Origin: Lepidodermella squamata
Taxonomy: Eukaryota > Animalia > Gastrotricha
DNA: 64,000 nucleotides
Direction of reading: 5' to 3'
Assembly: GCA_047495785.1 (NCBI GenBank)
Contig: JBLDXI010000001.1
Span: forward strand, 434,001 to 498,000
Part shown: positions 6,687 through 62,203 of the stretch, one piece after another
How positions within the stretch are numbered: the first letter of the stretch is position 1
Layout of the letters: the number at the start of each line of letters is the position of its first letter
Notes under the pieces: generated by a model
What the model saw: only the letters and a program-made list of their open reading frames with translations
The model's database searches: none
What the model was told of the DNA's origin: nothing
Program-made: the position numbers and the translations under genes

Positions 6687-8179
6687 ATGGCAATAATTTG
6701 TTTTGTTTGCATTTTTTTACTTTCTTTGCTAACTGATACGAGGCTTTGCCGGGCCGCTAGAAAAATTCCGATTCGCCACCCGAGAGTTATCACCGAGAAT
6801 TACAAGCCGAGTCAAACGCTGAAATGGGCGCCTACCTCAGCTCCTGGTTTATGTCTGGAATTTAAGTTGAACTGTAAGCTCCTTTTGATTAACGCAATTA
6901 CGTAATTGCTATAAATAAAATTGACGTAGCTTTGGACATGGAAGACAGCGAGGAATGCGCCAATGACGTACTCGGTGTTTATGATGGTCAATCACAGCAG
7001 AGCAATTTGATATTCTGGACATGCGGTACCGATAAGAAGACACCGGTTTACTCATCAAGCCATCAGATTTTGATCGTGTTTAAAAGCGATTCGAACCCGG
7101 CAACTGTTGGCAAGGGCTTTTCGGCCGTAGTTAGTTCAGTCGCGTGCACCAACAACCCGACAACTCAGAGCGTTACTTTGGTTATACCTCCTAGCCTCCG
7201 AGTTGCAGTCGTAGCTACACCGACCACAACTACTACTCAGCGAACCACACCAAGGACTACACCTTACGTGCCACCAACTTGCGGAATACCAAAATATAAA
7301 CCTATTGAGCAGATGGCCGGAATGGCTCGGCATCGCCGCGATTCAACTGATAACGCTACAACTAGAATCGTTGGAGGCATCATCGCTCGGCCTCATTCGT
7401 GGCCTTGGCAAATCCTTATTTTCCATGACGGCACGCCAATTTGCGGCGGCACCCTCGTTTCTTCTCGCCATATAATCACCGCTGCTCATTGTTTCCCGTC
7501 AGACATAGCGAAAAAGCTCAACGAGTACGAAGTCTGGGCTGGTCGCCATTACAAATTCATTTTGGACACTGTTACTAAACGAGAGCAAAAGTTGAATGTC
7601 GATGAAATTATTATCCATCCCGAATACAAAAAGGTCAACGAACACGATTCTGACATAGCAATCATCCGCCTTGGAGCACCTGGAGCCATTTATGACGATT
7701 GGGTGCAGCCTGCCTGCTTGCCTTACAACGAAACTCACCATCCAGCCGACGGTGCATTTTGCTTCGTAACAGGATTCGGAGCTACTAAGGGAACCGGTGG
7801 AGACGAAGAGCTGAAACAAATAAAGATTCCAGTAGTCAAAAATGACGAATGCGCAAGTTGGGAAAAGACGCTCAAGGTTTGAACTGCAGATGATTCATTT
7901 AAAAATCAACAATTATGATTTTTTTTTATCTTTAAGAAATTCATGACACCTCGCATGATGTGTGCTGGCTTCAAAGAAGGTGGCCATGACTCGTGTCAAG
8001 GCGACTCTGGAGGTCCGTTGGTGTGCAAAATCGGTTCTAACGACAACTGGGTGCTTAATGGCGTGGTTTCCTACGGCATCGGCTGTGCGGAACAAAACAA
8101 AGTTGGAGTTTACGCTCGCGTTACCTCCATGTTGCAATTTATACATGAGAAAGTTTTCGACTATAAGCACGTTATCTAA
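6687..8179 (+). CDS. Secreted CUB-domain trypsin-like serine protease 1
   Basis: Signal peptide; CUB domain ([16 protein letters not shown]); Thr-rich linker; R-IVGG activation site; TAAHC, DSDIA and GDSGGP intact; S1 Asp in HDSCQ; two short introns. Confidence 0.92.
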
Positions 8180-32767: not shown

Positions 32768-34267
32768 CTAGTCAGTGATTGTTTTTCGGAACCAGAAACG
32801 AACCCGCGCATCTTCCCCAGTTGTTACAAAAGCAGGCATTGTGGGCGAGTGGCAGATCGATCGGCAAATAGCGTTGTGACCAAGATGAAGTAGACGCTGG
32901 CGTTGCGTTGTGCGTGCGTCCCAACTACACATGGAACCAGTTTTTTCGTCCGGAAAAAGGACGAAATCCTCCGTGTGGTTGAAAACAGCCTAAAAGACAA
33001 TTAATAATCGATCACATCACTCAAGAATTACTCCATTTACCTGAATTCGATGTTCGGGCCGCCCTAAAGCACCAGCTCCTGTGTAAGCTAGCATCAACCT
33101 GGCGGCGCGAAGGTCCCACAGTTGCACTATTGAATCTTTGCCAGCTGAAATAACGTATTTCCCGTTCTTGGAAAAATATGCCGAGCAAACTTGCTCGCCC
33201 TGATGAGCTTTTTCGAACAACATGACACGGCGGTTACTGACGCCGTCCCAAACGGCGATATCGCCATCTTTGCTACTACTGACGAACATTGAGCCGGTTG
33301 GGTTGTACTTTAGACAGGTTATAGGACCTTTATGTTGGTCACCCGGGTCTGCTGAGACGAAGCATTGCGTGGTCGCAACATCATACAGGCGAACAGTGGG
33401 ATGCTGTGTCCCGACCAGCAAGTAGTCGCCAGATGGATGGAAAGAGACGACCCTCAACTCGCTGGCCTCACGGACAGCTTTAAAGGCTTTTTTGACCGAT
33501 GGTCTCGAGTAATCGTATAATTTCAAGTAATAATCGCTACTACCAGAAACAAGAATTTGAATAAATGGATGAAAATCGATGCAAGTGACTTCGAGGACGT
33601 GGTCGTAGAGAGTGCGAATAACTGGGTGAGTTTCCATCTGCTGCTGAGGCTGATTCTGAGGATCGCCAGTGTGCTGTTCACCGGGCGCCGTAGCTTTCGC
33701 AACCATTCTATCGACATCCAAAATTTTGATGCTCGCATCTTCGGAACCCGTTGCGACTAATAGGCCATTTGGATGAAAAGCCGAGGCTCGGCAAGGTGCC
33801 TTATGAATGGTAGAAAAGCAGCACTCGTAGAGCGCTGGCTCAGGAGCCAAAACTGCCGAGTCGACTGGGTAATCGAAGTCAAGCACTCGGTCGCTGACGT
33901 CCTCAGCTTGGACGCTATTGAAATCGAAAACGACAGATGGGCTGACTGGTCTGTCTTGACTTTCGTTATCAGTCGCATTTTCCGATTCCATCGGCTGAGT
34001 TTTGACTGTTTGTGTTGTCTCATCTCCTGATGCTTCTGCTTTCACGGGAGCAGATTCAGTCGGAGTCGATTTGCCAGTCTTCTTGTCAGTTTTCCACATA
34101 TTGTCGAACCACTCTATGAGACGGTTTGTAGGAACTATAGGCTCCGGAAATCCCATTTGCAGCTGAAGATTGTGGGCAATAACTTGATGTCCATCGTACA
34201 GCAACTGAGAAATTACCAAACGGTACAATGTATCCTTGTTTCGGAGCGTAGCTATGTCGTCTTTCAT
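32768..34267 (-). CDS. CSTF1: Cleavage stimulation factor 50 kDa subunit (WD40)
   Basis: N-terminal [13 protein letters not shown] dimerisation motif; [17 protein letters not shown] and WDGVSNR; one intron; last exon [18 protein letters not shown]...[12 protein letters not shown]. Confidence 0.95.
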
Positions 34268-34467
34268 CTTCACTGATAACAAATCTATTCTCCGAATTAA
34301 ATATACACAATCAAAACAAAATTATGACAAGTTAACTCTGGGATTTCACCAATCATTTTCTACTAGCTTGTCCGAATCAAGTCGATCGACGCACCGTCGA
34401 GTGGGCAGCTAAAATAGATAAAGTTCCACTGAGGAAGGCGTTAACCAGGAACAAAGTCGGGCTTTGC

Positions 34468-39890: not shown

Positions 39891-42689
39891 CTATTTAGTA
39901 TCGGCAATCATTTCACCTTCTGTTTGGCTGGTCGAAATAGGCGGGATGACGATGGGAAGCGAGTTTTGGGGTTGATCCGATTCCGCTTGCTTATCGAGGC
40001 TTTGAGGGCCGCCCATCTGTCGACGCGGCGCCGTCTTTTTGCGATCAATCTTCATCGACAGCATCTCGTCGGGGTTGTACTGCTCCGAGCCGTTGCTGCT
40101 GTCGAGGTCAGGAATGACAATCGGCGTCACGATCGGCTCTTGCTGCTGCAAGTTTCAAATAAAAGTATGAAAAATCAATTACGAAAATAAATATAATTTC
40201 GTGTCAATATTTTAACAGATTCAAGTTTTTAAAAGGGCCAAAGTTGAATTCGAAACCTGATAAACTGCACTTTGTGTCGCCCTGAGATTGTACTGCTGAT
40301 TGCGGCCGTTATTGCCCATTATCCGACCGCCATTGTTCTGGCGAAAATGACCAAAATTGCCGTTGTTATTTCCATTGCTATTATTATTGTTGTTCAAACG
40401 CGGCTGCATGTTATAGTGGTGATTGTGCTGGCTCTGGTGTTGGTGATGGTTGACGGCGCCGGCAAACGAAGAGTAGTTGTGCATTCGGCCGTAGCGATCG
40501 CTGCCGTTCCGCCGCGGCATGTTGTTATTCTGGTTGTTCTGGTTGTGGAATCGACGCGGTAGGTGCGGATTCTGCTGGTTGCCCGAAAGCATTGGCTGAT
40601 CACTTGCAGACGATGATTCCGAGACATTGGTGTTACTTCTCCGGCCATTCGCCTGATTGCCGCCGTTCGACCAGTGATTACCGTTTCGATTGCCGTTGCC
40701 GACCCAATTATTCATATCGTTTCGGCGCGAGGAGTTGAATTGAGGTTGATTTTGTTGGCTGGCATTAGCCGAGTCGTTTTGATGTTGCACCGCCGGGATC
40801 TGGACGTGAGGGAAGGTTGGAATCACAACAGCCCTAGGTGCGGTGACCAGCAACTTCTGAATTTCTTGCTGTGCTTGGGGAGGTAAAAATTGATTAGATG
40901 CCATCGGTAGAACCTAGAAACATTACGAATGAGAGTTAAGTTTATAATTGTAATAATTAATACTAACCGATCGATGAAGCTCATGAGCGCGGCGCTCTGC
41001 CGCTTCGATATCGATTACATCGTGATGAGCAGCCAAACCGGGAAAGGCATGATGCATGTGAGGCGGGAGAGGATGGGGCCGTTGATGCAACGGATTAACC
41101 ACACCACGAGCGGGGCCTAGCCCGTTGTGCAGTTTTATGAACAGCGAGGGTGATGTACTCAAAGACTTGTCGTCCGGTTCATCGCCGTAGTTCGAAAGTG
41201 ACGATTCTCCGTCACCAGCATTTGTTCCACAGTCACTTGCAGGGCCGATCGGGGCGCTGTTTGTTCGGCTATGCAGGCCGCCTTCCTTGCTATCATCATC
41301 ATGCTCGAAGCTGTCGGTGTTGCAGTTGCCTTCGTCGCTCGAGGTATCCGAGCTGACCCAATCCATTGGTTTGTCATCGCAATCCGTGCCGTAAAGATGA
41401 ACCAGCTCGATAAAGTGACGTTCAGCCCAGACTCGGTGGAAAACGGTCTCAGGATGGACCGACATGACCGAACTGAGAATGCTTGGGACGAGAGCTCGCT
41501 CTGAATTGGCCACAGAACTTGGCCGAATCAGCGATTCGAGTTCGCAATAAGCGAAATGAAAAGCGGCTTGAATTTTTTCGAAAGCGAATGATCCTCGAGT
41601 GACATCATTCTCTTTGTTGAATGGGTCAACCACTGAAAGCATGTGCTGCTGCTGAGGGTTATCGGGGTCCCAGTCGCGGCGAGCGAACCGAGATCCTGCC
41701 CCGGTTGGGTCAATGCCAACACATCTGTAGTTGAAGTTGATGCCGTAAAGCTCCAAAAATTCCAACAGCAGGACGCCAAGATTGGCAGTTGGAGCTCTAG
41801 CATCCTGCCCTCGCTCGTGAAGTTGAAAGAAATTTATTAGCATTAAAATCAGGCCATAAGATGAGAGGCCTCCGTGAAAGACTTCATTCAGTTCTCGATG
41901 TGCAATAAACTGTTTCAACACGAAAGCTAAAGGTCTGAGGGTGTGGAACCGTGTTTGCCAGTCATTCACAAATTTGACCGCATGGATACTCGCAGCTGCA
42001 CTGAATGTTATGTCAACGCTCAGTTTGGTGCGAAGTTCGGTCAATTTAACGATCGGAACTTGAGCCTTGTCGATAACGACGCTATGCGCTTCATCTGTCA
42101 CATTGCGGGCGATTAGAGCTTGCCGTAGTTTAACCAGAGATTCGACAGCAGTCGGGTGGCTTGGTTCGTGATGCCCATCAGCTATGTCGTCATCGTGTAA
42201 ACCAGATACGACTATGTCCAAGTCGCTAGTCGGGAGGAAAAGTTTAGTACGAGTACTGCCGAATACACGAACTTTTGCAGCCGGCCATACTTCCTTTACC
42301 ACTCTCTTGATTTGCTGCACTATTCTGCAGCGTAACCGGATTTCCCAGTTCCGAGGGCATAGCCACTGGTAAAGGTCATTTATTTCTTCGTGGAGACCAA
42401 TTATATCATTGGTATAAAGTTTCGATTTGGTCCACGGCACCATTCCGATAACAGGCGATGGATTAGTGGGGTCGATGCGGGCAGGTTGCTGTTTTCTTTT
42501 AGACAATCGATTGTCGTCAACAGGTACCAGAGAGTGTTCACCAGGCCGCTTTTTCTCTCTTTTTTTGTCAGCATTACGTTCACTGTCTTCCGTCCAGCTC
42601 TTTTTCAATTGCATGAATACATCATTGTCAGCTACGATATTCCACAGAATATGAGCAGGCCCGATCGGTTTCCGAGCATGACGTTCCAT
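39891..42689 (-). CDS. TENT4: Non-canonical poly(A) polymerase, Trf4/PAPD5/PAPD7 family
   Basis: GLHEEI, catalytic VFGS..TKLFLPTSDLDIVV, VPIVK, ELNEVFHGGLSSY, NLGVLLLEFLELYG and DPFNKENDV. Three exons with an N/Q/H/G-rich C-terminal region. Confidence 0.93.
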
Positions 42690-45600
42690 AAATCAATATC
42701 TACCAGCAGAGGACGTATTATAAGACGAAATCACTGACAAACTTAAAGGCTTGAAGCCTAAAATGTACAGCACATTCCAATGAGAAAACATTCTAAGCTT
42801 GATACTAATACTTCGATTCTAGGAGATGGCGTTGCATGCAACAAGGCCGCACATTTAAGACACTGGCTCTTAGTAACCCTGCGCTTTTGACATAACGGAT
42901 GGCGTCATAAGCGTATCAAATATAACGGCCTCAGGCGTCAAAACAGGTTTAACAGCAATGTTGGCAATGATCGATTGGTCCATCGAATCAACCATTATTG
43001 AGATTTTCAGAGATTAAGATAAAAATCAACATGTTCCAGACAAAAATGTAGGAGAATCAGGAGAAGCAGTTCGACGAAAAAAACATATCCTTATATCTTT
43101 TACTCGAAACTATCAAAACGTTGACAGTAATGTATAGAGTGACAGACACTTCTCACAGTCGCAGTGCCAATGACCGTAGAATAAAGATCGAGACCGCCAT
43201 ACGGCTGACAAAAAAACGCATGCATAGGGCCTTAAGCCTTGTGCGCCTCGTAAAACCGATTGATTGAAACGCCCGAAGCCCCAAGTTCCTAGCCTGATAT
43301 GGTAGCTAAAGGCGTCACCAGTTTGCGAAGAAAAATGCCCGCGCGGGAAGCATGGCTAACTGTGTGAAGACCGTTGTCGCTGCAAAATAATTCGAATAAA
43401 ATTGTTTTATTACCAATAGTGCAAATTACTTGATTTTACTCATTTTTATATCAAAGGAATAATACATTTTACCGCAGTAGAATATCGCGACCTTGCAATT
43501 TTCGTGTTTGTGAAGTTTTGAGTTTTGAGGAAGACAGGCGCAGCCTTGGCAAGCTAGATTACTGCTAACTATTAAAAATAAGTAATGACTGCTCTGAAAA
43601 GGCGTTTTGACCGGAAAACCAATTTTTCTGTCTTCGATCAATCCACCTGGTGGACCATTGAGGGCATTAATCACCATGCACCTTGTTTTTATCTAGCGAT
43701 GCACGCTGCGACAGAAGTCCGCGATTCGCTCGTCGTTCGCAACTAATATACAATGTTTGTACTATTCGTATCCTTCGTAAGGCAGCTTGTAACATCCAAA
43801 TTGACAACGTATTTTGATTTACGGCGGAATGGAATTTTTCGCTTTGTGAATTTAAAACTGAAAATCAGTCGACATAAAATCAAGATTAGGAGGCAGAGCT
43901 AGCATAAAAGTCAGTCGAATTCCGACAGGAAACGAAAATCTGACAGGCTCTGGAGCTTAAAGCTCTAAGACTGGAATGGCTGTCTATGTTGTTATTAGCA
44001 GGATTTCATGTTACATGCTGATCAGTTATTTTCTTTCATCGCTTTGATTGGATTGAAAACGCTGAGAATAGCGTTAAAAATGATCAATTTGACATGATTT
44101 TGCATTGTCGAATGACGCGTGAACCTTAGGGGGTTGGCGAAGGTTTCCGGATGGAGTATTCAGCGATATACTATTGGCGAGTAATCAGTCGAGCACAACA
44201 CGCAATGAGATTCGAGATCCACAGGTAAATATTACACAAAGAAATGTACAGTTAAGGTCGTTTGGATTTGAAAAGTTGGTGGCTGTTCCGAATATCTACC
44301 GGCTAAAGAAATCCGGTCCATATGACTAAATCCAGTCCACTATCTAAATGGCCAGTTTTAGCGGCGAATCTGTGGTGAAATTTTTTAACAAAGGTTGAGA
44401 TCGAATTTACTTCAAGAATATAATAAAATGTCATGGTGCAAGGTGCATGGTTCAATTTTCGCAAACAACATGACAGACCAGGGACGAAGAAACCTGATCT
44501 GATGATAATGCTGATGATAATGGTTTTCGCGTGAACTTTCTCTTCACCTCCGTCTCAAAGAAGCTCACCGTTGCAACGCGTTCGTCCTGAAAACTCTTTG
44601 AAATCGGTAACTATCGGTAATGGTGTTCCATAGCAAGCCGGATTTCCATCATATCACCTAGCTTTCTGAAATTTTACTCAACATTTTAAATGGCAAGTGG
44701 TTGCTGATTGTGCAACAAGAAGCCTGTTTTTCGAATGTGCGAATAAGCTTCGCGTCTTCGCTGGCTTGAAAGTTTTTCGCTGAATTTACCAAGATAACGA
44801 AACTAAGAACCATAATGCTTTATTCTCAATGCTGGCTTTAGAAAAACAGGCAAACATTGCTACCAGACATTAATGGGATTCGGTGACCAGATTATGCAGT
44901 TAATTTCAGTTTTAATCATGACAGCAAATCCAGCAAAATCCAATAACAGCCGCACGAGATTTCTCAAATCGCAGTCAAAACCACATCGAAAATATTGATG
45001 CCACACTCGCTTTTTCGCTCGCATTTTAATAAAAAACCATTTCGTCCCGTTTCGCATAACAGTGAATAAATTTAGCAGAAATATATAGGTAAAGATATGT
45101 TGTCGGTAAATAATAAGGATAACTATTACTATTATCATCGTAGGAAATTTCCAAAGGAAATTCAGCTTATAGCGCGTTTTTACATCTCAGATTTCACACA
45201 TGACGTTTCTTTAAGCTGTATCAATTCGAAAGTATAGTAAGAATAGCAGCCTTTCGTGTCGCGCACAAGAAAAGAAGAAAACAAGAATGTTATTTATGAA
45301 AACTGAAAATCAGGAGTAAATAGTAGTTTTTATCTTTACACGAAGATTCAGCTGATTCAAATATCGAAAAAATGTCTGCTATCGCACCAAAAAAATTAGA
45401 GCAGCTGAGTAGAAACCAGCAGCACCTCAGAATATCAGCTGATTTCGGAAAAGCCAGTCAGACCTCAAAATACGGAGCGAAAAAAAACAAAAAAATACAT
45501 ATTATACATTTTCAACTGCCAAAAATTAATAACGTTAAGGAAGATTCGCTCGCTCCGCATAAAAAACTGAATCCAGAATAACAACATTATGAAACGACTA

Positions 45601-46085
45601 TTTACAAGTATGTATAATTATGGTGATTTCGCTGAATAGAATGATTAGTATCCAAGGTAGATATTTACAGAATGAAACAAAGGTAACAATGGTGCTGTGT
45701 CTCAAAGACCGAAAAAGGCGACAGCGCCGCATGTTAACGCCAAGTGTGTATTATATATAATACTAGAGCTTTGCCGAAAAAACACGTTCAATAAGAAGAT
45801 GGAAACAAAACAAAATGAAGATTCGATTTGTTCAGATATGGGACGCGGCCAAGAAGAAAATGACGACACAGATTTGTTTCGTGTTATGAAAACAAAGAAA
45901 ATATGTAGTGGAAATCAAAAAAACAAAAACTGATTACATAGATGACATTCAACCTCGATAAATTCATCATAACCATAATCGTTGAGCAGTTCAAAAAATC
46001 TTTAATGTATCACCGGAAGTTTTGACGTGATTAGGCAAAAGCTTTCCTCTCACACGTCTTGTGTCCCTTTTTCGCTGTGCAATAG

Positions 46086-49000
46086 CTACTCGATGAAGTT
46101 GGCGTGTTCGTCGAAGGCGATGCCCGACTCCATGGCCTGGGCGCGGCGGATGCGAAACTGCTCAGCAGCGGCCAGCATACGGTGGTGCTGCTGGAAACTC
46201 GAGATCGCCTCCACATTTTCGACGACGCCAACGACAAAGCGCCGCTTCTGGGCATGACGCGAACGGTGCATCTGACGGGCTCGCTCCAGCAGCGTAATCA
46301 GCTGACCTTGCTGTTCGCTTTCGTTGGCTTCTAAAAGAATAAAATTGATACATTAGCTCACGTTAGTTCACGGTTTATAGATTATTTTTGAAACTAATAA
46401 TGAGGACATTTCAGGTGACGCTAAATCTACCATGCCGAAAAAATCGATAGTATCGAAAAAAGGAGGGAACCTAGCTCATCTTATCATCAATTTGACCTTC
46501 GATTGCGGCTTTACCAGCAATCTTGAACAATTTTTCATTATTTCTCAACTAAAAATGTGAATAGAAAAGTGGATAATCAACTTCGAATAAAAGAGATCAG
46601 GTTGTGACGCCCAATGCCATGATTCAACTAGAACTTCAAATATAATTGAAAATAACGGAGAATTTTATCCCAAGTCGAAACAATTGCCATCGGGTTTTTC
46701 AGTGAAATCGGTAAAAAATGCATCTAGTACTTTTAGGCTTATAAAATGGGTAGCTATTCGTACATAACTATGTACGCAGAAATTGCTATTCGTACATAGT
46801 TTTTCGCGATTTTTCAGAGTTATTCGAATGGGTGTGAAAATTCGACATTTGACGATGATAGCATGGAATTTCACAGGGAGATGCAGAAAAGTGAGGCCTA
46901 TCTAGTGGTCAAATTTCGTCAGATTATCTTTCAAAGTATTCAGGCTAGGGTCGTGACAAACAATTCAAATAATGCTACTTTGCTACTCTACCAAAGGGGG
47001 TCCAATGGTGATTTTTTGAGGGGAGATAGGCCTGATGGTCAGCTATCAGCACACACAAAATTAGATTGATGGGATGAAAATTGAGCCAGTCGTTCACCTT
47101 AGAAAAAAGCATATCGAAACTATGTACGAATAGCAATTTTCGCGTACATAGCCATGTATGAATAGACATTCCGTATAAAAATACTAAAATTCTCTGCGAA
47201 ATTCATAAGTAATTGTGCAATTTATGAGACTGTAATCGAAGAAATTCAACATTTCCCCACAAGTTGATTCAATTAGAATGAGTCTACTTCATAACATAGA
47301 AAGTCGGTTCTGATGACCCTGATTTTGTTTACCTGGATCGGATGCCGATTTCTTGAAAGCCTTGATTATCTTGCGGAAGCAGGCGGCGAACTTGTGGAAA
47401 ACCAGTCCGACAGCCATTCGAAATTTAGCCATAGTCAGGCAGTAGATGAAGCAATTGATCGTGTGATTGCAATCCGCCAGCCAGTTCAAGATGCTGTCGC
47501 GCGTCGTCATGTCATCGTTACCGTCGTTGTACTTGTTCAACTCGATGAAAATGTGGTGAACCGACAGCGGCATCGTTAACCCAATGAAAATCGTAGGCAA
47601 CGCCAGCAGCGTCAGCCAGGCGAATATCAAGCGACGCCGGCGACGGGCCTGTTTCTTGTGGTAGACAATGCACGCCTGATTCACCGGCTGTGTCTGTTGC
47701 GCCGGAACCGGCTGCAACGGCATAGCGGCGGGGATGGTTTGCAGCGGCGACATCGAACCAGCCACGGTGGTCGTCGCGGTTGCTTGCGTTCCCTGCCCGG
47801 TCGAAGACAGCGAGGTCAGACGACGGAAGGCGAACACGCGACGAGTCGCACCCAGGGGCGGAGCGTACCAGATGAAGCGAATCGTGTGCACGACGATCCA
47901 GCCGTTCAGAACAAGCAGGATCAACGCCGGCAGCCAGCAGCACTTGATCTCAGACAGAAACGGCCAGGCGTCGGTCCACTTGTCAGCGAGAAACGAGGCG
48001 GTCGACACGGCTCGAGTTGAAGCCGTCGACGTCTCTACCGTCGTATTAGTCGACTCAGTGCCATTGCGGTACATGGGAAACGTCATATTATCCCTTGCGA
48101 AATAGTTGACCGCGTTCACGATCATTAGGGCGCCACTGACGATGAAGAACGTTTCGAGTTGAGCTGAGCGGCGCTTGAACGTCGCGAAACCAAACAGGCC
48201 GAGCTGCGGCGATGTAGGTACCCTTGTCGCCGTCCTACGAGGGGGTGACGAGATGTGGCCATGATGGTTGTGGTTCCAGCACACACTTTTCCAACGCTCG
48301 ATAGCTATAGATAAATTAAAGAAAAATTAAATCATAAAATAGAATTTTAGTAAAAACAGAATATCTTTCACCGGAACAAAAGTCGAAATATGCCATGCGT
48401 CATTTTTTGAATAATTCTACGACTTTTAGGCGAAGAATGAGTGAATTGAACATACTGTCTTGTAGAGAATATTACACTAAATTTACTGGTGATTTTTCAA
48501 GAATTATTGTGGTCAATCTTGACCCGCAAGAAATATCCGAAAAGTGATTTCAGGCCACTGGAAAATTCCAAAATTTGGTTCCGGTAAAAGAAGGCCCTTG
48601 TACTAAAAAATCTTAATTTTCCGCCGACTCAATCTTACAAAAATGCATACTTTTCAAGCCAATAACACAATTCAGTGGTTCTCAAACATGTTCGCCCCCG
48701 GCCAAAAATCGCCTGAAGATTTATAACTAAAATCAGCGAGCGAAGCGACAACTTCTGTTTAGGAAATTGTGGCTGTTTATTATTCTGATATGGCCGATTT
48801 TGCTGGAAATTTGCAAACACTTTGTAAAATCCTGAATTCCTACATACGCATGGTAAAATTTTGCCATTGGGAAATTTCATTTCTCCAATGCTAGCCATAG
48901 AGTATTCCCTTATTATTGCCTACGAAAGAGCCGTCCGGCCGCACGCAATGCAGGAGATAGGCAAACTTTTCAAAGAAAGCTAAAGAAATGAAACAACATA

Positions 49001-49722
49001 AATCGAAGAAAATAATACAGCATCCCCAGTTTGTAAAAATAACTCGTGCATCATAAAATAAATTGCCAATGGAATTTCATTGAAATTCAACTTACCGATG
49101 AAAACGATGAGCCAAGCACTCAGATCGCGGAGAATGTTTAGAATCCAACTTTCCAGATTGGGATTGACGCGGCCTTCCTTGAAGAAAGTCGTAAGGTAGA
49201 AATCGAAGGGCGCCTCCAATTCGATGAGAAAAGTGAGACAGCCTGTCATGTCGATTGCGCACAAGGCGACGAGGTAGAACCAAAACGGATGTGACAAGAA
49301 GTGACGGTAGCACAGCAGAATTGCCAGCGAGAAGGCATTGCCACAAAACCCGACCAGCAACTGCAGCACTTGCATAATAGGCATGATCTGTAAAATCATA
49401 GCAAAGCTATAAATTTTTCATGTCTGAAAACAAAAATCACGGCGCGACTAATTACGGAAACAGCAGCTTCCTCTTAAAAGCGCGACCGTTGCCAAAAAGT
49501 GAGACATGTCAAGTTCAAAAAACACACCTTCTCTATAGGATCATGAAAATCGATCGGAAAACCGGTCGACGAAGTACTAGGCGGGAGCGACGAGCCATTA
49601 AACGAGGACAACGTGGTTGTGATGTACTCGCTAATATTACTACCATTTCCACCGCCGGTAAAAGTGGTCGAATTAGGATTACCGGCGGTCGTATTGAAGA
49701 AAGATGATTCAATCGTTGACAT
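46086..49722 (-). CDS. Class A (rhodopsin-like) orphan peptide-receptor-type GPCR
   Basis: N-glycosylated Ser/Thr-rich N-terminus; TM1 VGFCGN; TM2 YLVALCAID; TM3 LSAWLIVFI|AIERW; TM7 NHTINCFIYCL. A last exon at 46333-46086 joins in frame; unspliced, the frame stops at 47289. Confidence 0.85.
46754..47165. mobile_element. MITE-like element in the last GPCR intron
   Basis: About 50-bp inverted arms built from CTATTCGTACATA units (46754-46803 versus 47117-47165). Related ATTCGTACA motifs occur near 18898 and 35712. Confidence 0.7.
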
Positions 49723-51042
49723 ATTGTGAGTTTCGTAAGATTTTTATCATGAGCAGGTACCGAAAGTAATCAGAAAAGAGCATTTACAACGATGCTTGTA
49801 ATTTCACTTTAAACTGTTTTTCCTTCAAATTATCTATGGGACAGAAAAAGTATAAGAAATCAAGAGCTAATTAACCGCTTTTTCTGCCAAAGACATATGT
49901 TCATTGTTGTACCTCTACCTAAAATCCAAATGCACAAAAAATATTAATAATAATGGTATTACACGAGGAGAGAATCATGAAGTAGAATCCTAGCCAAAAT
50001 GCCAGGTAATAATCGTAAAAAAACCGTGTTGGTTTTTACGGCTAATAATAATAAAATTTGGCTGGTAATAAAATGGGTGAGCGGCAGGGGAGACGGCCAG
50101 AGAAAAAGGAGGGACGCACGCGTGCTGCTCAGACGGCAACAGCAGTAGGGTTTTCGACAGACGGCCAGAGAAAAACTAACCAGCAGCAACAGGAGGGTCG
50201 CTTTGCGAAAAATACACGCACACACATAGACATGGCACGGGCAGGCAGTCGTAATGATTAGCAGCCTGAACTTGTCGTCGTCCGCATCAATGTACTGGGG
50301 CGCACTTCACTACTAAATGCACGTGGTGTTGGTGGGGCTATTGCATTTTGTAGGAAATGAGCGCAGCCAAAATCATTAACATCAAAACTAACATGACTTC
50401 TACGCGCAGTGGGTCGAGGCCGCCCGTCTGTGCCTCTAATAAAACGCAGACTAGCACCAATAAAACGCAAACGCCGCACAACGAAAAACGAAAAAGAATC
50501 GCAGCCAAACTGACGCGCCCGGCAGTTATGACAGCCGACTGAAAGGCCAGGCCATGGCAGGTACAATTTTACCTCGAAAACCTGTCGACACGATCGACAC
50601 GAGAAATAATGAGGCAATAAAGTGTGGAACAAATGAATAAAAGCGTCTGCATTTGCAAAGAAAAGAGGAAGGAATTATAACGATTGTTCTCGTGAAACAT
50701 GTTGTCAAGCAAGAAGTCAGGCCAGCCATTTTTTTTTAACCCCGCGCCGAGTTCGGACTGAGAACATTTTCGTGTGGGGTGGCGTTATTTGGCGCGAGGT
50801 TTAAAGTCCATCAACGAACATGAAAACGTGCTGTTGTGACCAGTGGTCAACATACGATATCCAAAGAGAGTGACGAGCTGTTTTTTAATCGCTTCGCACT
50901 CGATAAACATCATAAAAAAACATCAAAACAAAGTGACCGATTTTTGCGCACCACAATATTATTTAAGCCCAAAAAAATGAGCATTCGATTCACGTGACTC
51001 GCTATCAATTAGTTTATTACCCAATTAATGATGACAATATAA

Positions 51043-52672
51043 TTATAAGAAACCATATTCACGCTTGTCGAGCTTTTTCTGCTTCGACATAGATTTGAGG
51101 CGTGCCTCGACGAATGGCCGCACAGAGTCATCGATGGCCATTTCATAGATCGCTTCACGCGGCACTGTTGATGGAAATAAAACTTTGGCGGCACTGATTG
51201 ATTTTGGACTGAGCGCAACCATGTTTGCCCTAGTAAAATCGAGGCCAGCGTTGAGACATTTCAGCTCGGGCTGACCGAGCCGCTGAATAACAGCGGTATT
51301 TGTTTCAGCTGCCGCTGTACCAACGATGAAAAGCAAGCGGTCCGAAAATTCGACTAAACTGGGTTGATATCGAAACATGCCTAGAAGAAAAAAATTAGCA
51401 AATGCGTCTTAATTATTTCTTTGCCCTGGTTTCCGAAACGGACCTTCATTCAGTTCGTGAACCCCGCGGATGAGTTCATGTTTATCCATCAGTGATAACT
51501 GAGCCGGCACACAATTTCTGATCATCGACAACCATTTTCTAACCGGAAGAACCGCTGGTAAAATGTCAATAGCCCAATGTACATTGAACCCGGCTGTATG
51601 CATTGCTGATAAAACGGCCCGAGAAGTCGGACACTCTGTGTTCTTCAAAAAATCAAGGCCGCTGGCGAAAAGTGGCAACGTTGTCGCGTCACCGGGCCGT
51701 ACAATGCACAGCACTTTACCGGTATCGGTAAGCGATTTTTTAACATGATAAAAAAGCCGCTCGAGGTCGCTTATCGACATGCCGGGTGCACAAACTTCGC
51801 TCCAATTGATGATGATGTGCTGAAAGTGACACTCTTGATTGCGCGATAGCATTTGAAAGTAAAGCTGAATCGGGCAGGATATCCTGTAGTCACCCTGACC
51901 AAGAGGCGCAGGCGTGTGCTCACCTGGGATCACTTGATTTGCAGTCGGCGGAAATGAAACAAACGTTATGTGCTTGAAGAGGGAAAATTTCTTCTCTATA
52001 AAAAAAATATTGATTTTAAGTCGATAAATTATCGATCGATTTTTTCCGCGAACCTAACGAGGCTGGAATCGAACTCCTGCTATCACCATAGTAGCATATG
52101 TCATCGACAGCCATGATGTCCATGTAGCGATGAACTCGTTCGTAAATATTGTGATCATAAACAAGACCGAATGAAGCTTGACCACCGAATAGTACCAAGT
52201 CATCGATTGCCTTGACAGTAGTCAAATCTGTTCCCGGAGCGATTTGAATTTTTTGAGGAGGAGGGGGGTGAGCTGCAACCTCGGCAGCAGCTGCCATTTT
52301 AGCTATCCGGTGATCTGAATTCGGATTAGCTTGTTGCGTCGGCACTAATTGGGCGTTCGAGGCGTTTGTATTTAAACTCTGGCAACTGTTGCTAGCAACC
52401 AAGGCTGTCGATGTTTGAGCCGGTGGCGGTGTTGAATTGCGACTGCTCAGCAAACTGGTTCCAGCGCTGCAATAGTACGCCTCCGCGTCAGCGTCGACTT
52501 GGTTCGGGGCGGTTCCAACCTCCTCTGAAAATCGAACAACCCTCGCTGGTAGGTCGACGCTCGATGATAGAGGACGGTGTCGAAGCTGGTGGTTCAACAT
52601 GTGCGGAGTGGGCGATCTATTTCTATGTTCGGATTTTCGCCTGTGATCGTACGGCTGGTGTAGAGGTATCAT
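51043..52672 (-). CDS. Uncharacterised protein with a degenerate class I SAM-methyltransferase-like fold
   Basis: Three exons splice in frame through short GT-AG introns. DDICYYG, FQHIII, VKKSLTDTGKVLCI and MHTAGF recall methyltransferase strands, but there is no GxGxG motif. Disordered N-terminus. Confidence 0.6.
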
Positions 52673-52904
52673 TTTCGCTATTTTTTATGCCTAAAAAAAC
52701 TGCATAAGAATTGTGAAAAAAACCAACGAGAAAAATTGACAGGTGTGCCTTTTAGTCCGATCTCTCTTTGCAATAAGAAGGTAGGAAGCTTCGCGTTTAA
52801 AGAAAATATACTGTGCGTCATGCGAATTGTTTTCATCAATAAAAAAGCGCGCGCGTGCGTACACATTGCGGCCATTGACAAGGTGGGAGCGAGGACACGC
52901 TCTG

Positions 52905-52919
52905 GTCTCCCTTGGCAAC
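52905..52919 (-). promoter_or_regulatory. RFX X-box-like motif
   Basis: GTTGCCAAGGGAGAC on the minus strand, about 235 bp upstream of the ATG at 52672. Confidence 0.5.
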
Positions 52920-53534
52920 GCCTATATTAACCGCATGTGATAGTCGTTGTTTGGTGTTATTCTAATAATGGGCGCGGCCATTTCACAGTAGCCATCTTAA
53001 TTATTAATGACTGTTGTGACAATTGAAGCTCGGCAATCGTGTCATTCAGAACACACATGTTTCTAAATTATTAGCTACCAATTTTAGTGATTGCGATAAC
53101 TGTCGAGATTTATAAAATAAATTGGTCGAACTTCCAGGGTAAAACTAAATGCCCAGACATATTGAATATCATGTAGATCATGTTTTATGTGGGTTGTTTT
53201 TTGAATAAATAATTCAATCACATTCGATGTGCTAATGAGTTCTTACCTAAATCTAAGGTGACAAAAACAACCGAATTACAGCGTACATAAGCTTCCCGTA
53301 CAAGTGGAAAGCACCTCGGCAACACCGGCTCTCGACAATTATTGCTATAATCAACGGTGACTTGAAGTGCGCGAGCACACCTTAGCACCTGGAAGCCTAG
53401 AAACTGTCCGTGACAAAGTACATACGCATTACAACAATAAGTTCAAATTTATTACTTGTGTTCTATCGCATTTTAATTCGATAAAGCAGAGATAATTTAT
53501 GGTAAAAAAAGTGTCAAGAAAATTATTCAAATAT

Positions 53535-54632
53535 TCAACAATCTGAGCGGCCAGGTTTGCATAACCACGGCGGGACGAAAAGGTTCGGCTTAGTTTTGAA
53601 TGGTTTCTGCTTCATTTTGATAACCCTGACGGGTGAGTCATAGTAGTCATTTTCTGGGATCCACATCGATGTCGTGGATGTAGTCGGTTGAGTGGTAGTC
53701 ATCTCCGCCATCATCATATGCCGGCGATAAGCGGATGGTTCGGGGTAGAATCTACTTTCTGCAGCGATTTTATCTTCGGACTTGAAGCGTCGCACGATCT
53801 GCATGTCCTTGTTTTCCATTATAACGACCTCGCCGTTTGTTTCATCGGGCGTTTCGTCTATTGGCCCACTGCTCCGGTCTGCGCCAATCAATGAGACTTG
53901 CCCGGTGGCAGCAGATCTGTCGCGCTGCATCTCAGATGGCTCGTAGAAAACTTTACCCGATATCGACTCGCCATCGATTTTAATGTTGCCAGACTCAGGC
54001 TCGTCCCTTCGCGAAATCCAATAGGTAGGCTGGTAATCAACCGGCCGATTTACGATGCGAGTTGCTGCTGCTGGCTGATCGGCCATCATCATTTCGTAAG
54101 GGTTCATTCGCATGGCGTTTTGCTCGGCCATCAACTTCTGGCGGATGTATTGGTTGTAGTCGATTGTTGTAGTTGGCAAGGGTTCGCCTGCTCGCTCCAT
54201 CACGAACATGGCCGGCTTAGCTTGCCATGGTTGCTTCAAAGCTGGCCAAGTACGCCAATTCTTAGAAATCTCTAAGCCAGGGCCGTTGGGATACAGATTG
54301 CCAGTATGTGGGCTGAAATGGACCTAAAAACAAAGAAATTAGAGGCAATGAGATATCAACTGGATCCTTACTTTTTTGCCGGATAGTTCGATCTTCATTT
54401 TACACCTATAAATAAAAAGACGATTGTTAGCAATATCTCATAACGACGAGTCCAAGATTCCAAACCTGTGCTGTTCCGGCGTGTTCCAATAATCAGAGCA
54501 GACATATTTTGGCGGCTGGCGGTAGTAACCAGGTGGGACAATGACCAGTTTCTCTTGGTTAATCGATGGCGGGCACGAGAGGGCATTACCAGCCAAGATG
54601 GTGACAACAATGGAAATTGAAACAAATTTCAT
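53535..54632 (-). CDS. Secreted PPGY-family protein A (unknown function)
   Basis: Signal peptide MKFVSISIVVTILAGNALS; three exons; VPPGYYRQPPKYVC..RCKMKIELSGKKVHFSPHTGNLYPNGPG; ends PPWLCKPGRSDC*. Confidence 0.8.
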
Positions 54633-54710
54633 TTTTAAACATAAACAAATTGTTCTAAATACAAGATTGAGAAAAATCAAGCAACAAAAACTATTACTGG
54701 CAATATCTTT

Positions 54711-55559
54711 CTAATCACTCTGCGTGATTATGCGACCGTTATTGGTTTTAGACTTCGATATAATTCGCCATTTTGCTGTAGTCCGCCTGCTGTTCACAGG
54801 CCGGCTTGTAACCACAGCGAAGTTACTCCGATCTGCAATATCAGCCTTGTTATGGGCACCAAGAAACGTCCATCTACTACCAGCTGCAGCTCGATCATCC
54901 CAAGAGACATGCCGGTCAGAATGAGCTAAACTGGAGCTATCTACGTAGTCGTAGTAGGCGGGACTTTTCGACCCTCCGGGTTTAACCGACCAGATCGCAC
55001 CCCCAGCAGCTCGACCCGGTTGTACCTGATCGGCATTGGGGCCTCGGTTCCAACGTGACTGCATGTCTAGATTCGCAAGACGAACCAAGTCCTGTTCGGC
55101 TTTCTGCCGTTCATTCATCTCTTCAAGGTAGAGCTGCTGTGGTTGCTTTTCAGCGGGCCAAACTTTCCAAGATTTGGAAATCTGAAATAAACCGTCAACA
55201 ATTGATCTAGAGAAAATCATCAAAAACAAACCTCAACACCTCGGTTGTATGAGAACTGCTCTCCAGTTTTCGGGTTGAAATGAATACGCTTTGGTGCATA
55301 TCTCGGGTCAGTTCGGCATCTTTAATTCGAGTTACAACAGAGATCAAATAATTGTGAGAGAATTAAATGGCTTTTACATTGTCACGTTGTTCTCGTTCAA
55401 AGCACAAACAGGCACTGCAGGTTGCGCCAGATAACCGGGTGGAATAATCGTTATTCCTCGATCCATGCTGAAACATGGTTCCGCAGGCGATGAAAGAACA
55501 ACTGTAAAAAAGAGACAGAGAAATGAATTTCTCCGCGAAATTTTGCCAAATCCTGCCAT
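54711..55559 (-). CDS. Secreted PPGY-family protein B
   Basis: Signal peptide; three exons; SMDRGITIIPPGYLAQPAVPVC..NNVTICRTDPRYAPKRIHFNPKTGE..ISKSWKVWPA. Confidence 0.8.
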
Positions 55560-55993
55560 GATCTCTGAATGTACTGCGTTACTTTGCTCAGCTAAACAGT
55601 TGTTTGTTTCGGCCAGAAATTGGGCTCAAAAGACTCAATCTGGCGCGCGTCACGTGTTGCAGTCTTACATCTCCGGAACTTTTTTGACCTCTCTTCGTGT
55701 ACAGGACGCGTCTTATGAAATTCCATTAAATTTCGATTCATTCAGACGAGAGGCCATGAAATTTGAGAGTTAAAGGTTTGGAGAATATAATTCCCAAGTT
55801 TTAGCTTCGAGTTCAAGATAAGTTGGGACTAAACGGTTAATCAGTCTTTGTTTTCTTATCTCAAGATTCATAATTTCAAACAAGTGTTCTAAAGAACTGG
55901 AATCGCTGTATTTTTATTCCCAGCTATACAACATTCACATAGATTTCACAAACATCTTTGCCGTAATAATGAATAGACAAACATGAATTTTTC

Positions 55994-56870
55994 TTAGCAA
56001 ATTCCGCCCATGCATAGCCAAGGAGGGTCGACTCGATTCGAAGGCATAGTTATTGTCCAAGGTCTTTCAACTTGAAGCGCTGTTGGCCAGGGATTTTCGA
56101 TTATTCGATTGGCAACAACTTCACCAGGCCGGACACGTTTCACCAAACTAAGATCATCGCCTTGAACCACGACAGTTTCGCCATTAGTCAGCAACCTCTC
56201 ATCAGCAATTCCAGGTGGGAAAATTGAAGCTGTCATGGTGTTGACCATCGGCGCCGTGTATTGCGGCTGGTCTGCCATGAGTCGTTGGGTCAATTCTGGC
56301 ATCGGAATTATACGCTGATTCTCAATTTCGGCCGCCAGCCTCTGATTGAGCAGCTGGTCAACTTCTGGTGCGACAACAGGCACTTGACTGACTTGGCTGG
56401 TCGGGACGGGGAGGTAGCTTGGAACTGACTGTTGCATGACCACTTTGACCGGAGATGTCTCGACGCCAGGTATTGGGGCTTGAATAGCTGCAGGCCAGGC
56501 GCTGCGCGGAGGCTGGATGAACCGACCCGGTCCCAAGGGGTAGGATTTGCCTGTAGTAGGATTGAAATGAACCTTCTTTCGAGAAACCTCCAGCTCTGGT
56601 CGACACCTGGAAACAATTAAATTTCAAATTCAAGTAATTTTATGAAAAGAGTAAAACTAGCCCAGAAAAGTGCGGATTAGCAGCACTGGCAAAGTTGTCA
56701 CACAGGTAACGCGGTGGCTGGTAGTGGTAACCAGGTGGAAGGGCCATGAATTCATAGCGATCTTTGACCGTATCGACATTTTTACGATTCCACGGCCATT
56801 CAAAGCCGACGTTAACCGTGAAAACGGCGGCGGATAAGAATGTAAACAGCAACAAATGAGTATTCCACAT
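55994..56870 (-). CDS. Secreted PPGY-family protein C
   Basis: Signal peptide MWNTHLLLFTFLSAAVFTVNVG; LPPGYHYQPPRYLC..GCRPELEVSRKKVHFNPTTGKSYPLGPG; ends PPWLCMGGIC*. Requires a GC-AG intron at 56661-56607. Confidence 0.78.
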
Positions 56871-57043
56871 TTCAGTTACGAAAACTTGAACGTGATGAAA
56901 TTGATGCTACTTTCACAACAAACCCTATAATACTTTGACTTGTGTAGCAACACAAATTGCGCAACAGATAGCGGCCAAAAATCCACTTCTTCCGAAATTT
57001 CATAAAAATATTGCGAAATTCATTCAATTTCATTTGCAATAAT

Positions 57044-57906
57044 ATGTTTGCCTGCGGAGCCATTTTTGTTATAGGTTGCCTCTTCTCGATATGCGAGAGC
57101 CGTTCGAGTATGGATCGCGATGCCGAAGTGGTTCCACCTGGTTACTTCCGAGAACCTTCTGAACTTATTTGCTCGCCAGATCAAAACAACGTTACAATGT
57201 ATCTTGCGTTACTTTCTACTTGAACAATTGTTCACCATGTTCTATTTTTAAAGCTGCCGTAGTGAGCCCCGCTACACCAAAGATCGGATTCATTTCAACC
57301 CGATTACCGGTGAAAAATACACGAAAAGTCCAGGTGCCAAGGTGAGTCTAGCTAGGACAATGAAAACGGCAAATGATTTAAAATTTTTAGTTGAAAAATA
57401 ATTGGCCCGTAATACCGACCATGATTCAGAGCGGACCTGCCAGAATTGTTCCCGCTTTTCATCAACCAAAGATACCGTTTGACGACGAAGCTACCATGGC
57501 CGCACTCGCGGTTATGGGCGTTCAGTCTTTGCGCCAACAACAACCGGATTTTTCGGAAAACAAGCAGTCTGAAAGTGCTGATTCTTTGAATTTGTCGCCA
57601 AATGAAACTGATGAAGATGGCCGCGAGCAGTCTCGCAAATTCTACAGAACTTGGTTCGTGATGAACCAGCCGCACGCTACTCATCCCATATTTCCGAGAC
57701 CGATCTTCGTCCGGCCAGTGCCAGCAGTTTTTGAAGCTGAAAATCATGAAATTCTTGAACCTGCTCAGCGAGACGGTGTAAGTTCAGAAAAGTCAACCGA
57801 CACCCTTGAATCGTCTTTGGAAACTACGACGACTCCGATTCGAACATCCACATCAGATGACTTCGAAGACGAATACGTTCTGGAGAAACGACCCATTCTG
57901 CTCTAA
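57044..57906 (+). CDS. Secreted PPGY-family protein D
   Basis: Signal peptide MFACGAIFVIGCLFSICES; three exons; SMDRDAEVVPPGYFREPSELIC..NNVTICRSEPRYTKDRIHFNPITGEKYTKSPG. Confidence 0.8.
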
Positions 57907-59756: not shown

Positions 59757-62203
59757 ATGCAGCTGAATAACATTATCAGATTTCGTCGGAAATCGGAGGT
59801 CGTTGGTTTGGCTGTGCTTAACGCTCTTCTTTTCCTGGCAATAGTTCCACCAGCAGTAGCTTCTTTCAAATCATCATATATCCCAAGCATCAAAATCGAC
59901 ACCGAATTTTTATCAAGAAGCAGATCGGAGAATTCAACTTCAACTCCTTTAGTGACTAAAGCCGAGAGCGACTTCTCTATAGGAACCACCACTGATGCTT
60001 CTCAAGGTAAGGAAATGCAATTGCATTAAAGCTTTCAGAGCCAATTTTTTTATTTGCTACAGAATTCTCCTCGGGGGATGGCATTAAGGAAATGGCTACT
60101 ACAACCGAGGTTGCAACAGCAGCGAGATCGATAGATTATATTACTACTAGCAAACCCTCGAGGTCACTGGAATCTCCAGATGGCCCAATGTCTTCCCGAT
60201 CACCCTACTTTGAGGTATTCGAACCCGAAGCCGACGAGCAGCTACTTTCTATACCAGAGGCAGGCGACGAGTATTTCATCGCAGAGATAACTAGTTTATC
60301 TTCAAATGGGACATTGGTGCTTAATCTGACGTCATCATCACCGAGCGCTGTGTCTTTACTAAGCAGCTCTTCATCATCGTCTTCGTCTGTTGGAACGCAG
60401 GCTTTGACACAGCAAGCTTCGACTACAACAACGACGGCAAAGACGCCGTCTGAGCAGCCGGCGATGAAACCTTGCCTCGAAATCGACGGCAGGCAATACC
60501 CTATCAAATCGCTGTTGGAAACAACGCCGCTTCATTTTCGCAAAAGCAGCACGACAGCGCCGTTGTCGAACAAGCGCGGCGATGACGGATTCATCGACAT
60601 TAGGGTCGAGCCTACTGGCGCTGACCTTTGCAGAAAGATCGCCGTGGAAGAAATTGAAAGATATTCCGCTATGTTTGCCAGCAATAATCATGGATTACCA
60701 ACCGGATCGTGCAAAGGCCCAAAAGGCGACAAGGGCGAGCCATCTATGATTACATTTACGATAGGCATGCCAGGTAACTGATTAATTTTCTCCTGATTAA
60801 GGGTTCAAAGCTATTTATTGTAATTTATAGGTCCCAAAGGCGATAAAGGCGATTCTGTACCAGTTTCGCATCACTCTCATGGCCTCAGAATGAAGGGTGA
60901 CAAGGGTGATCAGGGCCCACCTGGTCCCCCTGGACCTCCAGGGCCCAGTGGGCGACCTAGTAATTTTTTTCCGGGCCCTGCTATTGCTTCAAGCTTCGCC
61001 AGTCGGAAAGTTACGTTTGAAAGCCAACAACAAGATCAAGCAAGCCGGCCAAGCCCAATCAGTCAAGGCGGCACTGTCATTTTTCAGAGAAAATCCGATC
61101 TTCACGCCACATCCGACCGCTATGAAGCTGGCACCCTGGGATTTATTCTCGACGAGCAGTCGCTTATGATCAAAATTGATGCGAAAACATGGCGAAGTGT
61201 GTTGCTTGGAGCGCGGGAGTACGTTTCACAGTACGGCGAGGATGATAGCGAAAAATTGAAACCCGTGCCGTCAGCTGCTTATCTGAGGATGAAGACCAGC
61301 CACCGTGTCGGCGGCGCCATGCCGGTAATAGCAGACCGACAAATCGTGCTTCCTAAGCCCTTGCAATACCCACCTGTCATCAGCTCGCCCCGATTGCATT
61401 TGATCGCCGTTGATTCCCCAGTTTCAGGGCAACTCGGCGGAGTTTCGCACTACGACACCTTGTGCGACCGAGAGGCAAAGCGCCTGGGTGTTGCCGGGTC
61501 TTATCAGGCATTCATGTCCTCGCATTTCGTCGCTCTCGAGTCGCTCGTTAACTTCCACCACGATCTCAGCGTGCCTATTGTCAACTTGAAAAATCAGAAA
61601 CTTTTCAACAATTGGTACGAGCTGTTCAACGGAAAAGGCGGCTTACTACCACGATTCGACGACAACAGGCAATACCCAGAAACAATTTTCAGTTTCAGCG
61701 GGTATGACGTGTTTAAAAATGCTGATGGGAAGTTTAAACCTAGCGAGCGTTTCATCTGGCATGGCTCGAATTCGACTGGCAATACTGTTCATTCGTCGGA
61801 CTGTGCATCGTGGCGAAAACCTTCTGAAGACAACGCCGGGCATTTGGTAACCGGTCGGGGTAGCCCAATTGACCCTGATGAGCGAGCTATCCTAGGCCAG
61901 CGTGACTATGACTGCTCCCAAAGTGGCGTGCTGCTCTGTATTGAAGTCACCAGCCGTTACAGTTCGGCTGTGTTCGCAAAACGCCGGCCTGCGCTTCAAA
62001 AAACAGCACGAAAAATCGGCAGCGGTGAGATAGGCAAAAGACGAGGTCATCATCATAATCACAAGAAGATTTCAGGGAGACAAAAGCGGCGAAAGAATGT
62101 GCACTCATTGGAGGAGAATGTCTATTCAACTCATTCAGTTGAACTCGGCAGCAATGAAGTCACGTCGTCGACACTTCAAGCTGAGCCTAAACATTTTATA
62201 TAG
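59757..62203 (+). CDS. Multiplexin (collagen XV/XVIII family) with trimerisation and endostatin domains
   Basis: Three exons in frame; hydrophobic leader; Ser/Thr-rich region; short Gly-X-Y runs; trimerisation domain (GTLGFILDEQSLMIK..WRSVLLG); endostatin domain (LHLIA, LCDREA, YQAFMSS, PIVNLK, IWHGS, VLLCIE). Confidence 0.9.

Follow-up and report, generated by a model that had tools for sequence, protein, structure and literature searches.

What do four neighbouring genes in the genome of the gastrotrich Lepidodermella squamata encode, and do their products act as partners outside the cell? The genes, here named A to D, lie within a 64,000-nucleotide (nt) stretch of contig JBLDXI010000001.1 (positions 434,001 to 498,000; hereafter the window, with coordinates counted from its first letter). 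An earlier note, made from the sequence of the window alone, described them as a four-gene cluster of secreted proteins with a common N-terminal module of unrecognised kind, and proposed that one gene of each of two subtypes forms a pair. The cluster and its common module are borne out by spliced gene models and by the similarity of the four genes in tblastn searches. Our analysis indicates that the family is very likely real, secreted, restricted to one lineage and new. The pairing of the two subtypes is a more tentative proposal, which is weighed below against its alternatives.

All four spliced proteins match the pattern PPGY-x2-[QE]P-x4-C-x9/11/13-C-x10-[VI]HF[NS]PxTG, in essence as the earlier note had claimed, and in each of the four genes the codon just before the second cysteine is split by a phase-2 intron, which that note had also described. 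The module had been given as roughly 55 amino acids (aa) long. The conserved module is real, but the alignment shows that conservation continues through SKNWxxWPAxKQP, and therefore its length is about 90 aa. PPGY, P, C, C, HF, P, TG, G, and Q are invariant across six module sequences. The paralogy of the four genes is well beyond chance, with tblastn expect (E) values within the window of 6e-17 for A–C, 8e-14 for B–D, 6e-9 for A–B, 1e-6 for A–D, 9e-7 for C–D, and 4e-5 for B–C. The same searches found no fifth member of the family in the 64-kb window.

Relatives of A and B are present in metagenomic data. L001, one of three contigs from two ENA metagenome assemblies (L001, L002, and L003), carries a B-like open reading frame (ORF) of 208 aa, P0002, followed after 53 nt by an A-like ORF of 379 aa, P0001, and both are uninterrupted. 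In a phylogenetic tree, subtype 1 (A, C, and the A-like ortholog) and subtype 2 (B, D, and the B-like ortholog) fall on opposite sides of a split with 91/98 support, and the branches leading to C and D are long. The two subtypes proposed earlier are thus recovered together with their motifs: QPP[KR]Y, KKVHF, and a PPWLC...C end in A and C, and SMDR, NNVTICR, PRY, and RIHFNP in B and D. Both subtypes are old.

Protein A consists of a signal peptide, the module, an LMADQP motif, a Thr/Met-rich patch, and a C-terminal PPWLC-x6-C. The corresponding cysteine loop is C-x4-C in P0001 and in protein C, which ends in PPWLC-x4-C. Protein B is built from a signal peptide, SMDR, the module with a conserved NNVT sequon (retained in all three B-type proteins), a predicted helix, and a WD.R.AAG.RW tail, and the tail of protein D is acidic. 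The tails had been characterised as divergent and low in complexity. They are divergent, but they are not merely low-complexity sequence, because they retain motifs shared with the orthologs (LMADQP and YYDSP in the A-type, WD.R.AAG.RW in the B-type); no repeats were found in them. Secretion was judged from Kyte-Doolittle hydropathy, and signal-peptide cleavage sites were placed by hand according to the -3/-1 rule. The best 15-residue mean within the first 40 residues ranges from 1.85 to 2.56 across the proteins, and the best 19-residue mean outside the N-terminus is below 0.85, so that hydropathy indicates an N-terminal signal peptide and no later membrane-like segment. The products of A, B, C, and D are predicted to be secreted after removal of a cleavable signal peptide, with no membrane span.

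Two sets of contigs provide evidence that the genes are used. X2 is a run whose contigs behave as RNA, with no depth over the B–C and C–D intergenic regions, and X1 comprises contigs of a close relative that differ from the window by 1–3%. An X2 RNA contig of depth 52.6 skips positions 54324-54371, which is exactly intron 2 of gene A. A loose end at 55319 continues as 55378-55388, confirming intron 1 of gene B, and loose ends at 55183/55228 carry adjoining B exon sequence, confirming intron 2. The earlier note had named unused junctions as a result that would speak against it. Three of the seven predicted junctions have RNA-contig support, and four are upheld at the protein level by the uninterrupted ORFs of L001, which run straight through all predicted junctions of A and B (the B-like ORF, L001:3680-4306, spans both B junctions and P0001 both A junctions). 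X2 RNA contigs also cover the 3' part of gene D; their coverage of gene C is low, and none lies over the C intron. All listed insertions and deletions between the window and X1 with lengths other than multiples of three fall in predicted introns or spacers. Among them, X1 has one extra nucleotide at 56647, within the C intron, and lacks one at 57212, within D intron 1, and two length differences in D exon 3 are of 3 nt each. The models of C and D are backed indirectly, by homology to the other members and by this placement of length differences.

The listed coding differences between the window and X1 comprise 19 synonymous and 10 nonsynonymous changes (synonymous to nonsynonymous 5:0 in A, 2:3 in B, and 12:7 in C), and the three nonsynonymous changes of B are all in the signal-peptide region. 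Compared with the L001 orthologs, the modules are 73% (A) and 62% (B) identical and the tails 27% (A) and 36% (B), and synonymous sites are saturated. High identity of the module despite saturated synonymous sites, together with the synonymous excess relative to X1, shows that the genes are under selection and that the module is their constrained part. Purifying selection, transcription, and the splicing of A and B are established by these observations.

The introns of the quartet are 48–60 nt long and have GT-AG ends, except for the sole intron of gene C (56607-56661), which has a GC-AG boundary (exon end TGG, intron start GCTAGT); no other donor keeps the module in frame. Exon 2 of D is 88 nt long, the same as in B. 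B and then A follow each other on the same strand, D and C are arranged head to head, and each subtype-2 gene thereby adjoins a subtype-1 gene (Table 1). B and A are 78 nt apart in the window, and their counterparts in L001 are separated by 53 nt; both gaps are within the range of approximately 50–150 nt that separates same-strand genes in operons resolved by spliced-leader trans-splicing. The spacer of the window contains neither AATAAA nor ATTAAA, and gene C has its own AATAAA downstream. Acceptor-like motifs precede the downstream gene in both organisms: the ATG of A has TTTAG 21 nt ahead of it, and its counterpart in L001 has AATAG at a distance of 10 nt. B and A may form an operon and be co-transcribed, and the D/C interval, over which X2 has no RNA coverage, is a candidate bidirectional promoter. 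Downstream of TTTAG, an out-of-frame upstream ATG 13 nt before the start of A opens a reading frame of 18 codons (54633-54660).

The B-then-A order, the orientation, the short spacer, and the downstream genes are conserved in L001/L002. The block of conserved synteny contains B, A, g321, g115, and a gene resembling a G protein-coupled receptor (GPCR); it aligns positions 47409-55559 of the minus strand of the window with L002:10001-16632 and ends exactly upstream of B. The names g321 and g115 refer to ORFs of 321 and 115 aa in L001, of which the window has orthologs with no assigned function. The B-like and A-like genes of the relative (L001:3680-5498) are intronless, whereas A and B in the window have two introns each, and the g321 gene, a single ORF in the relative, is split in the window (52453-52046 and 51999-51433). 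The metagenome contigs have a guanine-cytosine (GC) content of 38%, compared with 44% in the window. They seem to come from a related animal that is poorer in introns. No copy of C or D is present at the B-A locus of the relative. In view of the head-to-head arrangement of C and D, their long branches, and their absence from this locus, the duplication of the pair as a unit, which had been proposed in the earlier note, stays conjectural.

The claim that the module corresponds to no known domain is upheld by all searches. None of the 24,736 models of Pfam-A reached its gathering threshold with exon pieces of the four genes or with P0001 and P0002, whole or as modules; the best noise, at E 0.02 and below the cut-off, was GH97_N, Bowman-Birk, and Sex_peptide. 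A profile of the module with 92 positions (A3) had no significant match among PDB sequences (best E 0.86, a dynein regulatory complex subunit). The ESM Atlas gave no usable match, since its scores were within the range of shuffled proteins, and no relative came to light in two JGI metagenome scans that used A-type and B-type alignments. Rfam returned nothing for the window, and no relevant literature was found for the PPGY motif. In a word-index protein search, exon 3 of A retrieved P0001 as its sole relative, and exon 2 of C had no match. Searched against 1.84 billion protein representatives, A3 retrieved P0001, P0002, and three weakly matching repeat proteins. This library did not return the RNA-derived fragments of L. 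squamata itself; its coverage of gastrotrichs is therefore thin, and the result says nothing firm about other gastrotrichs. So far, members of the family are known from a single animal lineage, which is very probably that of the chaetonotid gastrotrichs.

The three repeat proteins were rejected as relatives. One of them, P0003 (732 aa, no Pfam family), has about ten FNPxTGxxYxFGPGxxPPxGWKxL repeats alternating with YVDPxTGExxW units, and among outside sequences it alone bears a likeness to the HFNPxTG core. The module core HFNPxTGxxYxxGPG...W resembles the P0003 repeat FNPATGEYFRFGPG..GW, and in this respect recalls the xFNPxTGxxY hairpins of WW- and OCRE-like domains. Domains of this type have a YYxNxxTG hairpin between two conserved tryptophans that are some 20–22 residues apart. 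However, the match comes from a repeat protein and spans only 29 columns (hhalign probability 57%; E 3.9e-6 summed over five repeats), no family member has a Pfam hit to WW or OCRE, and weak WW and OCRE hits below threshold occur only in P0005 and P0003, which are unrelated repeat proteins. We take the resemblance of P0003 as chance or as a convergent hairpin motif.

The number of cysteines provides a clue to how the proteins may assemble. After the likely cleavage, A and P0001 contain five cysteines and B and P0002 three, whereas C and D have even numbers, four and two. A, B, P0001, and P0002 each have one cysteine within the first three mature residues. C has none there, and the corresponding cysteine of D falls in the c-region of the signal peptide. 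An odd number leaves a cysteine either as a free thiol or in a disulfide with another molecule. A partnership of subtype 1 with subtype 2 is the most economical reading, because A and B have odd numbers of cysteines and the genes are arranged in a manner suited to co-expression.

Based on the gene layout and the protein sequences, a mode of assembly can be proposed. B and A are probably transcribed as one unit, and D and C may share a divergent promoter region, so that one gene of each subtype would be expressed together through this layout. The subtype-1 and subtype-2 modules would pair outside the cell, and in the case of A and B a disulfide joining the extra cysteine at each mature N-terminus would secure the link. 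The variable, probably largely disordered tails would lend material or binding properties to an extracellular assembly such as a cuticle, adhesive, or egg envelope. We infer from the present data the formation of a heterodimer, its disulfide, and the tissue and role of the family. As a whole, pairing included, this is the best explanation that we can offer, and we place its probability a little below even. The A–B disulfide heterodimer, considered by itself, is possible but on balance doubtful. We consider improbable a bolder version, in which the module represents a novel fold for dimerisation outside the cell that only gastrotrichs have, a trans-spliced B-A operon ensures equal amounts of subunits for a disulfide heterodimer that builds a phylum-specific structure (cuticular scales or the duo-gland adhesive), and C and D form a non-covalent variant served by a bidirectional promoter.

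Several observations weigh against the pairing of the subtypes. AlphaFold2 did not give a confident fold for the module (predicted local distance difference test score, pLDDT, of 45), and therefore it is conservation that argues for the module being a domain. The full-length B-type protein P0002 was predicted with a pLDDT of 47, and its only confident part is a long helix of residues 96-133 directly behind the module. The suggested pairing draws on sequence evidence rather than on a model of a complex. The odd cysteines are equally compatible with homodimers or with cross-links to other proteins. The cleavage sites were judged by eye, and the upstream cysteine of D might survive cleavage, in which case the parity argument breaks down. 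A and B are not charge-complementary, because both are basic (isoelectric points of 8.8 and 9.8, respectively). The adjacency of paralogs is weak evidence for pairing, because tandem duplication places them side by side anyway. Finally, no RNA contig lies over the B-A spacer, and the X2 contigs are blank over 54543-54691.

The strongest competitor, which we hold to be unlikely yet worth serious consideration, is that each protein serves by itself, as a monomer or homo-oligomer and without specific pairing of the subtypes, as a structural or matrix constituent of cuticle scales, adhesive secretion, or egg shell, and that the gene layout is a trace of tandem duplication. Duplication by default leaves paralogs in tandem, and the secreted appearance of the proteins, their variable tails, and their good representation in whole-animal RNA contigs agree with such a role. 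Thr-rich patches suggest O-glycosylation, and the long branches of C and D are as in fast-evolving structural families. However, the subtypes are old, the B-then-A order with its very short spacer has been kept in a second organism, and cysteine parity differs between A/B and C/D in a coordinated way. The composition of the tails, without repeats, is also unlike that of typical repetitive structural proteins.

It is decidedly less probable that the family is a secreted signalling ligand of two paralogous subunits, with the constrained module as the receptor-binding part. The small conserved module with one disulfide, the adjacency of the paired genes, and the GPCR-like gene in the same block of conserved synteny are consistent with a ligand, but the linkage of the GPCR-like gene may be general microsynteny, because unrelated genes lie between. 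Furthermore, fast-evolving tails of 130–270 aa are unusual for hormones, the proteins have neither a cystine knot nor another hormone fold, and the module is not flanked by processing sites. We consider very improbable that the A-type genes encode prohormones from which the PPWLC...C end is released as a cyclic peptide, similar to somatostatin, allatostatin-C, or urotensin. A, C, and P0001 all retain the C-terminal cysteine loop, and P0001 has a KR site 17 residues from its end. However, precursors of somatostatin and allatostatin-C have a dibasic site directly ahead of a loop of fixed length and conserved sequence, whereas no dibasic site precedes the loop in A or C, and the length of the loop (4 or 6) and its residues vary. 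The B-type proteins have no such end, and constraint is greatest in the N-terminal module rather than at the C-terminus. Virtually no credence is left for chance ORFs or decaying pseudogenes, a reading that could appeal to the confinement of database relatives to one lineage and to the non-canonical GC donor of gene C, but is refuted for A and B by spliced RNA contigs, the synonymous excess and intron-bound length differences relative to the close relative, and orthologs conserved beyond synonymous saturation.

Table 1. Coordinates of the gene quartet, its spacers, and neighbouring features in the window.
Feature	Position in the window	Strand	Details
Gene A, subtype 1	54632-54466, 54405-54372, 54323-53535	minus	329 aa, spliced model
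Gene B, subtype 2	55559-55378, 55319-55232, 55181-54711	minus	246 aa, spliced model
Gene C, subtype 1, divergent	56870-56662, 56606-55994	minus	273 aa, spliced model
Gene D, subtype 2, divergent	57044-57198, 57254-57341, 57391-57906	plus	252 aa, spliced model
B-A spacer	54633..54710	minus	78 nt, B stop to A start
C/D interval	56871..57043		173 bp between divergent start codons; candidate shared bidirectional promoter
g321 and g115 orthologs	51046..52453	minus	tblastn 5e-106 and 8e-44; tblastx; two genes downstream of A
GPCR-like gene	47409-48305	minus-strand block	weak 7tm_1 hit, E 0.0028
Multiplexin-type (XV/XVIII-like) collagen, last large exon	60890..62203	plus	Pfam Endostatin 2.5e-34; G-X-Y run, residues 3-23

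The earlier note had also drawn attention to a basement-membrane collagen directly beside the family. The collagen is real, as its Endostatin domain and G-X-Y run show, but its position next to the family is not shared by L001/L002, where a Cys-loop channel gene and no collagen is located upstream of the B-like gene. The neighbourhood of the collagen is therefore probably coincidental. Elsewhere in the window, CstF-50 (ORF of 421 aa, 33017-34282, minus strand) and a poly(A) polymerase of mitochondrial type (ORF of 588 aa, 40923-42689, minus strand) are each encoded by one long exon, which illustrates how few introns many genes of the window have. The best matches of CstF-50 among proteins of named species share about 50% identity with it and are scattered over ticks, scorpions, a leech, a nemertean, molluscs, and flatworms; a single ENA protein is closer, at 76%. 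Pfam identifies two genes of trypsin-type proteases on the plus strand, at 6932-7882 and 16670-17521, and a CUB domain shares the ORF of the first. The AT skew of the plus strand is strongly positive (0.12–0.14) at 44000-52000, over a run of minus-strand genes.

There has been almost no molecular biology of gastrotrichs so far. One gastrotrich genome was published in 2024, and the published assembly of L. squamata comprises 122 Mb in 157 contigs with a GC content of 43% (PMC11660948). No annotated gastrotrich protein was among the results of our searches. A secreted family that is constrained, expressed, and without relatives elsewhere is a candidate building block of structures peculiar to the phylum, such as the scaly cuticle, the adhesive tubes, or the shell of the resting egg, and the B-A pair offers a clean test case of whether an animal operon can co-express two partner subunits. 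Where a phylum has been poorly sampled, lineage-restricted families turn up often, and there is as yet no sign of an unusual mechanism here. The family is new but belongs to a familiar type, that of secreted proteins confined to one lineage, here in a phylum that has hardly been studied, and its interest is modest unless the operon-encoded heterodimer is real.

Three known systems help to place the quartet. In some secreted heterodimers, such as the glycoprotein hormone GPA2/GPB5 and bursicon alpha/beta, the two subunits are encoded by paralogs that lie side by side. As in these hormones, the putative subunits are paralogs that share one domain, their genes are adjacent, and cysteines are available for pairing. 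Unlike them, the gastrotrich proteins lack the cystine-knot signature and have one conserved cysteine pair and long variable tails, and their heterodimer is a proposal drawn from the genes. Spliced-leader operons of nematodes, tunicates, and other animals resemble the B-A arrangement in the same-strand genes 53–78 nt apart and perhaps in the acceptor-like motif before the downstream ATG. However, such operons usually join unrelated genes, whereas B and A would be two paralogs. The quartet also resembles the orphan secreted families that form tandem arrays in small invertebrates, which also combine a signal peptide, a small conserved part with cysteines, and fast-evolving tails, arise by local duplication, and have no homologs outside their lineage. 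The quartet of L. squamata differs from them in that two old subtypes occur as adjacent pairs, one of which has kept its synteny in a second organism.

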